Source: Carpediemonas membranifera BICM (taxonomy: Eukaryota; Protista; Fornicata). Taken from it: a stretch of 64,000 bases of DNA. How positions within the stretch are numbered: the first letter of the stretch is position 1; each line of letters begins with the position of its first letter. Location of the stretch: positions 111,665-175,664 of the forward strand of contig JAHDYR010000041.1 of NCBI GenBank assembly GCA_019828565.1, given 5' to 3'. Under the pieces are notes generated by a model. That model saw only the letters and a program-made list of their open reading frames with translations, had not been told where the DNA came from and searched no databases. A program made the position numbers and the translations under genes. This document shows positions 10,522 to 63,939 of this stretch, in pieces.

Positions 10522-10590
10522 CATACTGTCTCCGGGGGGGGGTGAGGTACCCACCTCGAATGGGTACCTTACCCATGGGTAAGGTACCCA
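10522..10590 (+). repeat. Left TIR of element A, containing a perfect 30-bp palindrome (10561-10590)
   Basis: Reverse complement of 34894-34961 apart from G-run length (9 vs 8). Confidence 0.95.
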
Positions 10591-11749
10591 CCGTATCTCG
10601 AATCTTTTCTAGATACGGTCCCGAAAAACCACCAACCAAGGCCGCCAGTTTTTTTTCCTGCAAGAGCTCAAGTCCGGTCTATGACTGTTCTAGAGCTGCC
10701 CACGCGGTCCCCTACACTCACATAGCAACAGTAGAGTGAGTCCAGTGCAATTACGTTGATACATGCGGAGATATAACAACCGGACAAAAAAATACAAACA
10801 TGCTGCGTCATCGCTCTATGGTCTATGACAGGTCTACAAGCCGCTTCTGCCGCCCTGAAAACGTCCCTGACGCTTCATCGTCGAATCGTCAGATTTGACA
10901 CATTGATGTGATCAAAATGGATTTGATAGACATGGGTCCAGATCCTGCAGTTGGCCATCCTGAAGCGCTAGGGCGGCCTGCAGACCGCAGCAATGCCTCT
11001 GCTGAATGCCCTTCATGCCTGACGGACAGGACGCGCGTTGACTCAAAAGGACTGCATGTTTCGGCATCAGAAGAAGGCTTGAAATACAACGGAGTCATCG
11101 CCGAACCGCTCCGACCAAGTCGGTTATTAGGACATCGCGTTCAAACGCCCTCTGCAATTACCAAGTCAATAGATGGGAGTCGACCTGATGAGCACGTCAT
11201 TTTGGGCCCCATGTGACCCTATAGCTGAGCTTGGCTGGGCGCTGCTGCGGCCATGGGCCGCTAGTGCCCTTACTGGCTCGTTTCTCCTCGTATAGCGGCC
11301 GTAGAGGTCTGGTCTGAGCCTCGTTATAATAGTCTGCCCGAGTAGAGTCCAGCCATACCATAAATGCCCCCCATTCCCCCCCTCCCGGTCGCTCATACCT
11401 CCAAAATGGCCTATATTCCCTGTAGGGAGATTAATAAGGGCGGATTTCCCATAAGTCGTGGCATAGAGGGAAGAGACTTTGTACACAGCCTCCTGATCGT
11501 GGGTTCAATTTTCACCGGGAGCAATATGCTCTTTTTGGCAGACAACGCCGCTCCGAGCTCTATCGCGCCCAGCGGTGCCTGCAGCGGCCAGAACAGAGCT
11601 AGAATTCGGGTGATTTTTAATCTCGATCGAAATGCTGCTGAAGCGGGGATGCAGAGTCTGAAAAGACCCATCTCCCTGTCCGATCTGGATACCCCTGACG
11701 ACAGATGGAATGACTGAAGCTGTAAACATATCCATTGACTCTGAATCTT

Positions 11750-12679
11750 TTATTTCTCCATCTGCGAGTTAAGCCAGGCCACTGCCTTTCCCGTCAGATA
11801 TACCTTACGCGTGTCGTGCGCCTTCTTTGTTGCTCTTGCGGCCGAAGCATCAACAGTGGCCTGCTTCAACAAATCTCGGCAGCTAGACTTCGGCGTCTTG
11901 GTGCCACGTCGCGTGCAGGCCCACTCTCTATCGTCCACAGACTCACCACACACAACGCATGACCCTGCGAATACGGTCGGTGGCTTCTCCTTCAGCTTCT
12001 GTCGAAGCAGATCGCACATCGCGGTCTTGACGACGCGTCGAGATAATTCATCCGTGCGCAGGGTACTAACAGGCTCAACCAACAGCTCTGTCTGAGTAGA
12101 CGCCTCCTCTAGGTCTCACACAGTCTGAGTCTCTGCATGCTCACCCTGTGGCGAAAACTGCTGGCATTTTCCCACCATCCTCGGCTTATCAGGATCAGGA
12201 CCCAGCGCAGTCATGTAAACAGGCACCTCAACCCGCTTCTCGACTATCTTGACAGGCTGGGAGCCCCTGCGGGAAGGGGCTTGCGGGTGAACTCGCGTCC
12301 TGGTCGGCCCCCCGTTCGCCTCGTTGTGCAGAGCCTCCATGAAGGCATTGAAGCCGTCATCACGGCCCACCTTCTGTGTCACAAACGACATGACGCATGT
12401 GACCGACATCTCAAAGGATGCAAAATCGTCAGCACTGGAAACATCGCGATTGTGGCAGATTGAGTTTCGAGCTGCCAACAGCTCGCGTATATGTCTCTTA
12501 TCAGCGTGGTGAAGATCAGGAACACGATGTAGGATCGCTTGCAAAAGCATAGCCGGATCCATCTCGCCACCGTCACCACGGTACCTCGCGATGTACTCCT
12601 GCAGCTTCGGAATCATCCTCAGTAGCGCTTCAAACATCATGCTGGCGTATCCTGCTGAATCCTTCGCCCCAGAGCTCAT
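11750..12679 (-). CDS. HEPN-like (RxxxxH) protein with C-terminal Cys cluster; internal TGA at 12116-12118
   Basis: LLAARNSICHN in a helical context; the element C copy has CGA at this codon and reads through. Confidence 0.55.
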
Positions 12680-13141
12680 ATCGGTTTCTTCAGAACGAAA
12701 TTCTAAAGAAATGTTCGCGGGTATGCCTGATCATCGCGCGTCGAAAGACAGCAGGAACGTACCCTACAGCTCAGGTTGAAGTAGGCTTGGCTTTGGTTCA
12801 ACTGATAAATGCGCCATTGCTCCGTTTATATCATCCAATGTTAGGATGCCTTGCTATGATGATATACCGGTCACTACGCTTCTGGGCGACGGTGGAGGCT
12901 GATGGTATGGCAGCGCAGGGGCATGAAGCGGGTCAGAGGGGTGGGTAGTCAAGGGATACTGACCGATCTTGGAACTTGGATGATCGTTGAGAACCAGATG
13001 AACTTGAGGCAGTGGTGGAGGAGGAACTCGCGGTCCGTGTGGGGCAGGGTCTCGCCGACGATGAAGGCCATGGAAGAGGCGGCCTGGGTCATCGAAGGGA
13101 CCTTGACGGGGTCAGCCCAGTTGTAGTAGAGGTGGGAGGCG

Positions 13142-61419: not shown

Positions 61420-61484
61420 CTGTCAGTCGCTCTTTCAAGAATTCTAAAGATCCTAAAAATGCGTGACTTCGAGAAGATCATCTA

Positions 61485-62720
61485 ATGCCAGCCACGGAAC
61501 TAGAGATGAAGCGTGGAAATGAAGGAACTACTCCGGACACCCGAGAGACGAACTCTCAGAAACGCAAGCCGATGGTCAGGTGGAATGACGCCGCAAAGAG
61601 CGAATGCAGGTCGGCTCTCATGATTGGTATGCTCAAGGCATTCTTTTGCATCACCGTTGATGTGTTTGGAACGGATATGACTGGTCTATCTGTCCGTAAG
61701 GTGGCGAATGCCTACAATCACATCATCTCGGTGTACTTGCAGCCCTGCCACCCTGATCCGACATTCTTTGATGGTATCAAGTCCCTCACGGCTGTATCGC
61801 AGGGTAGGCTTGTCATTGGGCATGTTAAGGAGTGGGCAACCCAGTCTTGCCACTGCAACATCGGCATTTCTGATCAGGCTCCTTCGAGAGTGTTTCATAA
61901 CCTTTCTCGGGCCCCCAACCCGGTGCGATCGGAGCTTCTGACCGCGATGAAGAAGATTTTCACGAGAGTTGGCCTGGACGTCCCCCAGAATTTTGATTCG
62001 CGTCCTCTGTCCCTTAATCTGGTGGACCTTTCGGCACCCGACATATTTACTGGTCGGACGAAGACGTTTTTCAAGACAGCAGAAATCCCCCATTCCGTGC
62101 CGCAAGTGAAGCAGGAGGTGAAGGTTGACCCCGTTCGACCCTCTGAGTCTATCTCTAAGCGTAACGTCATGCTACTCGATGACGTCCATCGCATGACACA
62201 GCGCATGTCGGAAGATCTCTCTCAGCTCAAAGAACGGCCGGTAACCGCTGATTCAGACTCTGACGATGATGGAGAGAACCTCCTTGACTTGCAGAAGAGG
62301 ATGCTTGCCTTCTGTTGCGGCCATTGCCACAGCTTGGACTGGGTTGGCAATCTCAACACGTCAAAGTTTGTCTCGTGTGGAGAGTGCGGCAGGAACTTTC
62401 ATGACAATTCCGTTTGCGTGCCTGCTCGTCCGGAGAAATGTTCAAAGACTGCCAACTGGACGAAAGAAGCCAACAGAAAGAAGTCCTCGTGGAAGTTCAC
62501 ATGCCAGGCTTGTGTCCAGGAGAAGACTTGTTTCGCATGCCAGAAGAACGCCTCGGTATATCATTGTCGGATGTGTGGGCACTGGTTCTGTGGTAACAAG
62601 GGCTGTATGGGCACCACTGCCGTGAAGGTCGTCATTGACGGCGTGAATATTCCCAAGATCCGTCTTTGTGACGATTGCCTTGAGAACTTCAAGTCGGTGG
62701 TTCAACAGTCGGAGCAGTAA
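61485..62720 (+). CDS. PHD-like zinc-finger protein (411 aa), head-to-head with transposase C
   Basis: CGHCHSLDW..SCGECGRNFH...C..FTCQAC plus a second Cys cluster; CHSLDW is shared with 14501-15859. Confidence 0.8.
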   Translation: MPATELEMKRGNEGTTPDTRETNSQKRKPMVRWNDAAKSECRSALMIGMLKAFFCITVDVFGTDMTGLSVRKVANAYNHIISVYLQPCHPDPTFFDGIKSLTAVSQGRLVIGHVKEWATQSCHCNIGISDQAPSRVFHNLSRAPNPVRSELLTAMKKIFTRVGLDVPQNFDSRPLSLNLVDLSAPDIFTGRTKTFFKTAEIPHSVPQVKQEVKVDPVRPSESISKRNVMLLDDVHRMTQRMSEDLSQLKERPVTADSDSDDDGENLLDLQKRMLAFCCGHCHSLDWVGNLNTSKFVSCGECGRNFHDNSVCVPARPEKCSKTANWTKEANRKKSSWKFTCQACVQEKTCFACQKNASVYHCRMCGHWFCGNKGCMGTTAVKVVIDGVNIPKIRLCDDCLENFKSVVQQSEQ

Positions 62721-63864
62721 AGATACAATTGAATCTTTTCAAACATATTTTCATGAAGATAGATCCAATGAAACTATGTACCATGAGCCCGATTGCTCAG
62801 TGATTATGTGATAATCCTGTGTGACCCAGGACAGCGTGCTCCTGGAATCAACAGGGCACAAAACACCCTGCGTATTCCGGTAGCACACCGTTCTGACTCA
62901 TACGTCCGTCTCTGGTTGTCGTATACAGGTCTATTTACGTGTTTGGCGATGGCGCTCCCTTAAATCTGCTTGAACGGCGTGTCGTGGCTGTCAGTATGCT
63001 GCAAATGTCGCAGCGAGAAAGGAGTCACCAATCGCGTTCAGCTTTTCTTGTTTCTCGCCTGATACTGCTCGTAATATCGTTCAAGCGTGAATCTATGAAG
63101 TAATGGGACTGAATGGCCTCTATTGCGTCAATTTCTTGCGTAATCGTTGTTGAATGGCCTAGAATAGATGTTGCAGCTGCTTCCAGCTCCTGTTGCATGC
63201 TAAATGCTGTGTTTTGGACAATTGGTCGTGTTCAGGCAGATTTTTTTCGTGCAAAGTGCAGGCTAATACGCGCCCTTAAACTGTGGGATCAGCCGCTGGG
63301 TAAATATACTGAGAAAAAACCATATAGCTGAGTTCACTGTCTTGTGCTGAATACGGTGGCGCCATTTATTTCTCTGAATCGCTAAGTTTTGTCAGCGTTG
63401 ACCGCGCACGACCGGTCGTCCTTACGCGATGACACCCAGCCCATCTTGTAGGTCGGGTGGCCATACCTCGCGGCCTTGCTTGCTTTTCTTTGACGAGCAA
63501 TATTCCCTGAGTAATAGCCTCTCCTTTTCTTCAATTCGACTCTAGCCAAGTCAAAAAACAAGAAATCGACCATATCTCAAAATCTAACAGGTAGATTCAC
63601 TCTGAAAGTGATTATGCGCATATGTACCTCCTTTCAACTACTCACATAATCACTATCGTAGTGAATCTACCTGTTAGATTTTCTGTTATTGTCCATTTTA
63701 TCGTTTCGTCTTAACCTGCACGGCGAAATGCTCAAACCAGGCAAGGAGTCAGAGCCAGAGCTTCTTTCCATGCTCTAAGTACATCATATGGACTCTCAAG
63801 AAGACCTTCGTTTATCTCTAAATAGCTTAAATTTAATGAATACTTCATTTCTGAGCAAGAAATT

Positions 63865-63939
63865 GTAGATTATCTAGCGTTTTGAGGTCGAAGATAATCT
63901 AGGGTTTAGCAAAGATAATCTAGGGATGTTGACAGCATG
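63865..63939 (-). repeat. Right TIR of element C (terminus reads CATGCTGT, one substitution)
   Basis: Reverse complement matches 44061-44135 at 73/75; followed by TSD AA (63940-63941). Confidence 0.95.

Follow-up and report, generated by a model that had tools for sequence, protein, structure and literature searches.

Nested gene-carrying transposons in Carpediemonas membranifera as candidate members of a previously unplaced CMCT lineage

Among DNA transposons, the CMCT clade comprises EnSpm/CACTA, Mirage, Chapaev, Transib/RAG, Plavaka and ESTA, which have CA..TG ends, target-site duplications (TSDs) of 2–5 bp and, reportedly in all members, the zinc motifs C(2)C and H(3-4)H (PMC12730594; Kojima 2025). 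Large members have been described in red algae, with EnSpm elements of 16–20 kb and 4–5 open reading frames (ORFs) in Chondrus (PMC6431247) and Plavaka elements of 17.4–19.1 kb with three accessory genes (PAG1-3), including a SET gene, in Bostrychia (bioRxiv 2025.02.11.637652). Here we describe three elements, A, B and C, in a 64-kb window that forms the end of contig JAHDYR010000041.1 (175,664 bp; assembly GCA_019828565.1) of Carpediemonas membranifera, a free-living fornicate metamonad whose genome, obtained from nanopore and Illumina reads, is known for the absence of canonical replication and repair machinery (PMC8516963). We read A, B and C as three families of one previously unplaced CMCT lineage of autonomous cut-and-paste transposons, with a probability of roughly 85%; movement by CMCT-type cut and paste as such is very likely. 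Loci on other contigs that hold relatives or copies are given L-numbers, and metagenomic transposase homologues P-numbers.

An initial annotation of this DNA had described nested elements that have terminal inverted repeats (TIRs) as well as 2-bp TSDs, and our analysis confirmed this core observation. The junctions 10521/2, 34961/2, 44060/1 and 63939/40 lie exactly where they had been placed, and self-BLAST showed A (24.4 kb) and C (19.9 kb) to be complete, TIR-bounded and each inserted in one copy of B. The elements, their ends and their transposases are as follows.

10522–34961, + strand: complete element A of 24,440 bp, of which about 18 kb is non-redundant, lying in 5' non-coding DNA of B copy 1
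10522–10598, + strand: left TIR of A, CATACTGT and repeated GGTACC palindromes
34888–34961, − strand: right TIR of A
10520–10521, second copy 34962–34963, no strand: TSD of A, GG; single GG at the empty sites in B2, L014, L015 and L017
31122–33860, + strand: transposase of A, 912 aa, intact; D352, D431 and E730 numbered from the GTG at 31119
44061–63939, + strand: element C, complete, 19,879 bp (about 18.6 kb non-redundant), in a 219-aa ORF of B2
44061–44135, + strand: left TIR of C, CATACTGT and TAGATAATCT repeats
63865–63939, − strand: right TIR of C, beginning with CATGCTGT
44059–44060, second copy 63940–63941, no strand: TSD of C, AA; single AA in L007 and L014
58863–61419, − strand: transposase of C, about 851 aa, with a +1 frameshift (extra G) at 61156; intact in L006
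1–10521, − strand: B copy 1 (B1), main body, which extends past the left edge of the window by about 1,083 bp to the far TIR
34962–35503, − strand: transposase-proximal end of B1, 48-bp TIR at 35456–35503
7437–9980, − strand: transposase of B1, frameshifted by homopolymer indels
39546–44060, + strand: B copy 2 (B2), 5' part, TIR at 39546–39593; resumes at 63940–64000, where the contig end cuts it
40631–43171, + strand: transposase of B2, 846 aa, intact; D353, D434 and E705; modelled (pLDDT 81), RAG1-like fold
35504–39545, + strand: circularly permuted unit of a non-LTR (long terminal repeat) retrotransposon, bounded on either side by a 66-bp direct repeat and placed between outward-facing B ends; a target, not a family member

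The TIRs of A pair 10522–10598 with 34961–34888 over 77 columns at 96% identity with one G indel, and those of C pair 44061–44135 with 63939–63865 over 75 bp at 97% (both by self-BLAST). B has a length of about 12,144 bp and a TIR of 48 bp; its far end was recognised in L003/L016, L014 and L015. CATACTGT starts on the forward strand at 10522, 39546 and 44061 and ends on the reverse strand at 34961 and 35503; the matches at 29739 and 34526 are internal to A and lack TIR partners. The terminus that the initial annotation took to be common to all three elements is thus present at the left ends of A, B and C, whereas the right end of C has CATGCTGT.

B1 and B2 are inverted copies, 99.7% identical over 3.97 kb once A and C are removed, and at the empty sites of both insertions the TSD dinucleotide occurs once. 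B2 is the empty site of A and has a single GG, as had been reported. The duplication of C had likewise been read from the other B copy as AA, but B1 reads CA at this position, where AA flanks the inserted element left and right, so that the window alone fixes only the length (2 bp). Since B copies outside the window read AA in L007 and L014 and CA in L015, AA is the TSD of C, and B copies are polymorphic (CA or AA) at this position. Empty sites were seen on four other contigs. The duplications of A (GG), C (AA) and the related element in L004 (GC) are 2 bp of free sequence, and a matching pair at each of three independent filled sites has a chance of about 1 in 4000.

To find relatives, a hidden Markov model (HMM) built from the three transposases was searched against 1.84 billion protein representatives, with frameshifted ORFs entered in searches as separate pieces; spliced gene models were not required. 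This gave 16 hits at E<1e-30 followed by a tail of remoter environmental proteins; among the hits looked up, all named ones were C. membranifera hypothetical proteins and the remainder were metagenomic or environmental. Word-indexed homologue searches had returned only the transposases themselves or close environmental kin. Relatives were absent from viral contigs (IMG/VR) and prokaryotic genomes, and of the metagenome scans the first had no matches and the second gave PPCM01 contigs only. Contig PPCM01000946.1 (L004; metagenome assembly GCA_002919055.1) carries an element that is complete at 11,629 bp, has CATACTGC at its ends (CATACTG) and TIRs about 70 bp long, and is flanked by a duplicated GC. 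The element interrupts a Gypsy pol gene: the frame is free of stops once the element and exactly 2 bp are taken out together, but not when 0, 1, 3 or 4 bp are taken out with it.

L002, L006 and L024 hold additional TIR families, while L008 and L020/L021 have ends of the CATGCTGT type. In all, at least six families of TIRs have the common terminus CATACTG or CATGCTG (CAT[AG]CTG), the terminal 7–8 bp being kept in all, and inside it most families carry their own, mostly palindromic, subterminal repeats. C and the L002 family have the same subterminal repeats and close transposases. This arrangement would fit a conserved cleavage signal combined with a co-evolving binding site. Near position 3420 in L020 and L021, the CATGCTGT ends of a metagenomic family are preceded by CACTGT or CACGGT (two copies, different flanks), which may be a true CAC-type end or a target preference.

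B ends were found with seven different flanks at 99.5–99.8% identity, and the B PHD gene occurs in 8 variants across about 10 contig records; on this sequence evidence, B has been mobile recently. Its copies in L014 and L015 end about 400 bp before the second end, and those in L007, L016 and L017 are interrupted or truncated. A second copy of C on contig 61 is 98.7% identical over 4.9 kb and has an intact 851-aa transposase. Nesting in mobile elements recurs: A and C lie in B, B in a non-LTR retrotransposon, the L004 element in Gypsy, and the L006 family in a C-like element. The near-identical B copies at different flanks and the independent L004 element, together with the predicted Asp-Asp-Glu (DDE)/RAG1-like fold described below, support the earlier proposal of an autonomous, multi-gene cut-and-paste lineage.

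Each element encodes one transposase of 850–910 aa with a predicted RNase H/RAG1-like core, in agreement with the divergent protein family noted in all three. The A, B and C transposases are 26–30% identical pairwise (A and C, 26%), yet the motifs W-x-D, xD(H/N)(K/H/P)A, PPxMHxSH and EExFERxF are invariant or nearly so. The two aspartates are about 79–81 residues apart and the glutamate follows after about 260–300, and D/D/E is kept in 16 family members and in distant metagenomic kin. Profile searches against Pfam, NCBIfam and PHROGs gave nothing meaningful and those against PDB sequences gave no match; in alignments of 21 and 24 members (A3, A4), no member matched a Pfam transposase family even at E≤2–5. 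Pfam includes models for Plavaka, Transposase_21 and RAG1. The AlphaFold2 model of the B protein (pLDDT, a per-residue confidence score, 81; predicted template-modelling score, pTM, 0.74) reproduced the order of strands of an RNase H fold; D353 and D434 lie on strands, there is an insertion made of helices, and the closing helix begins with E705. In Foldseek, all 46 hits at E≤1e-3 were RAG1, lancelet RAG1L (BbRAG1L) or HzTransib (best 1e-8), and the placement in the CMCT clade follows from the fact that every significant match was of this kind. Among viral structures (BFVD), nothing matched the transposase model below E=0.016.

Several points weigh against our reading of the elements. The fold similarity is modest (TM-scores of about 0.35/0.5 at 10–14% identity). 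The PDB is not known to contain a structure of EnSpm, Plavaka or Chapaev that could compete with RAG1; this partly accounts for the first rank of RAG1, which is therefore no evidence of a special RAG affinity. A is on record only once, its transposase having been found on JAHDYR010000041.1 alone, and the OTU, chromo and HEPN assignments among the accessory genes are weak. Finally, the zinc motifs C(2)C and H(3-4)H lying after the second D and before the E are degenerate in A, B, C and close kin, where the CxxC position reads YPxPF or similar, at most a single H remains and there is no second His pair. In a distant sister group from metagenomes, which aligns by hhalign at 99.4% (E 4e-21), the corresponding positions still read QRCSxC and YWHSxxH, with both motifs in P0032 and P0034 and CxxC in P0025 and P0042. 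The Carpediemonas-type proteins form a clade with support of 99 in a tree of the hits alone. Because the aligning sister group retains both motifs, the zinc site was likely lost secondarily in the Carpediemonas-type group.

A different placement would make the elements highly divergent members of one of the catalogued CMCT lineages (PlavakaB, EnSpm, Mirage, ESTA or Lanisha), maybe already present in Repbase. PlavakaB, with CATCA..TGATG ends and 2–3-bp TSDs, and red-algal Plavaka/EnSpm elements of 16–20 kb with accessory genes including SET lend this some credit, but we consider it unlikely given the lack of any Pfam transposase match, ends of the form CAT[AG]CTG rather than CATCA, the lost zinc motifs, and a profile search whose looked-up hits were confined to Carpediemonas and environmental sequences. 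The searched literature contained no paper describing these elements or tying such transposons to Carpediemonas. The earlier statement that they match no described family holds for Pfam, PDB sequences and this literature, whereas the broad class, the CMCT clade, is known.

Beside the transposases, A carries 8, C 9 and B 7 distinct accessory genes. The initial annotation had given about 10 cargo genes for each element and 20–25 kb for the whole family; 7–9 genes are distinct, and part of A and C is internal duplication; sizes range from 11.6 to 24 kb (B, about 12,144 bp), with non-redundant sizes of 12.1 kb for B and 11.6 kb for L004. The accessory genes and repeats in the window are listed below.

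12116–12679, − strand: A, HEPN-like protein with RxxxxH motif (Swt1-like HEPN E=0.004, below cut-off)
13141–29510, no strand: A, repeat array in which a 671-bp unit occurs about nine times, whole or in part and in both orientations; also a tandem duplication of 2.1 kb
14501–15859, − strand: A, PHD and FYVE-like zinc-finger protein, present in most related elements
15929–17035, − strand: A, 368-aa protein of no assigned family, homologue of C 48972–50174
17065–17733, + strand: A, SET-domain protein
18309–19097, + strand: A, protein with a weak C-terminal chromodomain-like segment (six CBX chromodomain matches, E 1.3–2.1, not significant)
20423–21037: A, truncated duplicate of the chromo-like gene
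22421–23947, − strand: A, acidic protein with a C-terminal OTU-like domain (DGxC...H; viral OTU E=0.044, weak)
25465–26883, + strand: A, protein of no assigned family, homologue of C 55706–56938
29509–31104, + strand: A, propeller protein of the RCC1-like and not the kelch/RAG2 kind, encoded immediately upstream of the transposase
45456–46193, − strand: C, HEPN-like protein
46737–48270, − strand: C, RCC1-like protein, two frames
48972–50174, − strand: C, 400-aa protein of no assigned family
50242–50901, + strand: C, SET-domain protein
51075–51920, + strand: C, chromo-like protein (weak)
52666–54181, − strand: C, OTU-like protein, two frames
55706–56938, + strand: C, 410-aa protein of no assigned family
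57103–58398, + strand: C, protein kinase (Pkinase E=5e-24) with a C-terminal zinc ribbon
61485–62720, + strand: C, PHD/FYVE-like zinc-finger protein, divergently oriented from the transposase
1–660, + strand: B, 3' part of a PHD/FYVE-like zinc-finger gene whose complete product has 406 aa
684–1709, − strand: B, caspase-fold protein with a conserved GH...C dyad
2201–2709, + strand: B, SET-domain protein, two frames
2736–3698, − strand: B, OTU-like protein
4007–4864 (− strand), 5668–6366 (+ strand) and 6428–7087 (− strand): B, three ORFs of no assigned family

SET proteins were identified in A, B and C by Pfam, with the family profile matching EHMT2/G9a at 2e-11, and all three elements also encode PHD and FYVE-like fingers, which match ordinary PHD/FYVE fingers, and OTU-like DGxC...H domains, with a viral OTU as the best, weak match (0.044). 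For the caspase-fold protein of B, Foldseek returned CED-3 (3e-6) as well as caspases, MALT1 and CHAT. Chromo-like (weak), HEPN-like and RCC1-like proteins occur in A and C, and a kinase in C. The same accessory families stand beside the transposase in L002, L004, L005, L006, L008 and L009 at 22–46% identity with catalytic motifs kept, and GNAT acetyltransferases occur in L008 and L009. This recurrence identifies the accessory genes, as far as sequence comparison goes, as a long-resident module and not a recent random capture. Cargo has also been exchanged between families, since A and C share blocks that are 93–97% identical (23069–26348 with 53302–56577, and 11640–12787 with 45153–46301) whereas their transposases are 26% identical. 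Scans for tRNAs and Rfam families gave no matches. In P0058 (JGI metagenome), a distant transposase homologue is fused to a ubiquitin C-terminal hydrolase domain (PF00443), an echo of the deubiquitinase cargo. By eye, the N-terminal helical part of the A 25465–26883 and C 55706–56938 proteins looks like a tyrosine-recombinase core-binding domain; no profile matched.

This gene content bears on two further explanations. Under the first, the elements would be RAG-like (RAGL) transposons of the ProtoRAG/AanRAGL type, with propeller and PHD genes in the place of RAG2. RAG1 does provide the best fold matches, most elements have a PHD gene, and the propeller gene of A, like AanRAG2L, is the immediate upstream neighbour of the transposase and has its orientation. 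However, the propeller matches RCC1/HERC/UVR8 and not kelch/RAG2 and is missing from B and L004, the PHD protein resembles ordinary fingers, the TSD is 2 rather than 5 bp, and neither asymmetry of the 12/23 kind seen in recombination signal sequences nor a RAG1 Pfam match or zinc site was found; the idea is largely refuted and has very little chance of being right. Under the second, the elements would be endogenous virus-like elements, Polinton-like or giant-virus fragments with a borrowed DDE integrase. Their length of 12–24 kb, the intron-free multi-gene layout and the protease and SET genes recall large DNA viruses, but none of the ORFs covered by profile scans matched a capsid, DNA polymerase or packaging ATPase, the IMG/VR and BFVD searches were equally empty, and a 2-bp TSD with a RAG-type fold is unlike the retroviral-type integrase of Polintons. 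A viral origin is accordingly highly improbable.

Internal duplication accounts for about 6.5 kb of A, mostly from a 671-bp unit made of the SET 3' end, a spacer and the start of the chromo gene (native copy 17676–18349), and for about 1.2 kb of C. The 671-bp unit is amplified inside A only, and tandem duplications of 1.1–2.2 kb are also present in C, L002 and L003. Such repeats could stem from template switching or else from errors of assembly. Frameshifts at 7380–10004, 61156, 47656–47879 and 53867–54181 affect the B1 and C transposases and several cargo genes; of those compared with a second copy, nearly all are homopolymer indels, likely nanopore errors.

That the nesting or the internal repeats as a whole are nanopore assembly artefacts, as a long-read assembly, homopolymer indels in several ORFs and the large B1/B2 inverted repeat at a contig end might suggest, is very unlikely, because B1 and B2 differ by two distinct insertions that have separate TIRs and TSDs, a further contig bears C, empty sites exist on four other contigs, and a complete relative lies in GCA_002919055.1; only the internal 671-bp repeats of A and the frameshifts are still suspect.

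Several arrangements around the elements were also observed. The retrotransposon at 35504–39545 is one restriction-endonuclease-type unit (reverse transcriptase, RT, Pfam E=6e-12), and the two B ends are inserted 66 bp apart in its coordinates; this layout might have arisen by local hopping within a tandem array or by transposition of the alternative-end kind. The B1/B2 geometry recurs at L002 13670–21792, where two ends of one type, from a C-like family, stand head to head and enclose 8.1 kb with RT and Dam-methylase genes. In L006, an identical 170-bp flank is duplicated about 14 kb apart (7055–7224 and 21042–21211) beside an end of another family (7225) whose partner end was not found, which suggests transposase-driven rearrangement. 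The OTU-like gene of B in L007 contains a 2.7-kb insertion (16144–18922) with 71-bp terminal direct repeats, and in L016 another repeated element (11537–13548 and 19328–21145) cuts a B copy off after 2,058 bp. This element has a 605-aa ORF with kinase-like motifs by eye and no Pfam match.

Returning to transposition of the CMCT type, and by analogy with RAG/Transib, a transposase dimer would bind the subterminal repeats of its own family, synapse the ends and cut at the CA termini, probably with a hairpin on the flank. Strand transfer with a 2-nt stagger followed by repair would then yield the TSD. Elements may grow through internal duplication and swaps of cargo blocks between families, and the accessory writers, readers and proteases may shield the element from silencing or license it, and possibly steer insertion to regions rich in transposable elements. 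Chromatin-level anti-silencing or licensing would be the most likely accessory role (SET methyltransferase, PHD/chromo readers, OTU deubiquitinase and, in relatives, GNAT acetyltransferase), to which we give even odds. Like roles have been proposed for the PAG genes of red-algal Plavaka and for fungal TET/JBP cargo (PMC12730594; bioRxiv 2025.02.11.637652).

These elements extend the RAG1/Transib/CACTA clade to Metamonada through an enzyme too divergent for Pfam and provide a natural setting for asking if transposases of the RAG type can dispense with their zinc site. Their accessory set is among the richest seen on a eukaryotic cut-and-paste transposon and is conserved across families with only about 25% identity, so that anti-silencing encoded by transposons becomes open to direct tests. 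As the elements are young and multi-copy, transposon cargo may account for many "hypothetical" genes of C. membranifera and for some members of its SET, PHD and RCC1-like families. We tentatively propose, at somewhat less than an even chance, a superfamily-level RAG1-related branch of anaerobic and environmental protists that lacks the zinc site thought universal and whose stably inherited chromatin/ubiquitin toolkit (SET, PHD, chromo, OTU, caspase-fold, GNAT), exchanged as modules, counters silencing.

Comparison with the CMCT clade as defined revealed CA..TG termini with TIRs in at least six families, TSDs (GG, AA, GC) within the 2–5-bp range and a DDE transposase with a predicted RAG1/Transib-like fold; the C(2)C and H(3-4)H motifs are lacking in A, B, C and close kin. 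The elements are, as had been stated, much larger than typical TIR elements, but size alone is not new because red-algal EnSpm and Plavaka reach 16–20 kb. With PlavakaB and the giant red-algal Plavaka and EnSpm they share CAT..ATG-type ends, a 2-bp TSD (PlavakaB, 2–3 bp), a CMCT DDE transposase, giant size and SET cargo. They differ in having CATAC/CATGC rather than CATCA..TGATG ends, no Pfam Plavaka match in the 21- and 24-member alignments, 7–9 accessory genes instead of three (PAG1-3) or TET/JBP, and a fornicate metamonad as host.

Transib, RAG1 and RAGL (ProtoRAG, AanRAGL; PMC9435367) resemble our elements in the predicted core fold, the W-x-D first Asp, the helical insertion and the EE-x-x-E catalytic Glu, but have 5-bp TSDs and CAC ends where ours have 2 bp and CAT, possess the zinc site and have a much smaller gene content. 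Their kelch-PHD RAG2-like partner has no counterpart here, the propeller being RCC1-like and PHD lying in a separate gene. EnSpm/CACTA, Mirage and Chapaev (CMC) share CA..TG ends, short TSDs and subterminal repeats with our elements, in which the zinc motifs are degenerate and a large conserved accessory module is present. The third terminal base is T instead of the C of the EnSpm/CACTA CAC..GTG termini, one metagenomic family being ambiguous (CATGCTGT after CAC[TG]GT, two copies), and profile scans detected no Transposase_21 (Tnp2) domain. The PP-x-x-H and E-E-x-x-E-R motifs of the transposases presumably recall Chapaev.

ESTA was likewise recognised solely through structure-level similarity to RAG1, but its TSD is TA only, whereas GG, AA and GC were found here. 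Lanisha, compared by description only, has several ORFs in about 10.9 kb and is known from plants. Polinton/Maverick elements (15–25 kb; PMC6431247) are alike in size, TIRs, 5–10 ORFs, a protease gene and protist hosts; their protein-primed PolB, packaging ATPase, capsid and retroviral-type integrase were not found by profile scans, and our elements have a RAG-type enzyme and a 2-bp TSD. Set apart from the named lineages by their descriptions and by Pfam, A, B, C and their relatives probably represent a new CMCT lineage of superfamily rank with an unusual enzyme and a rich, conserved accessory kit.

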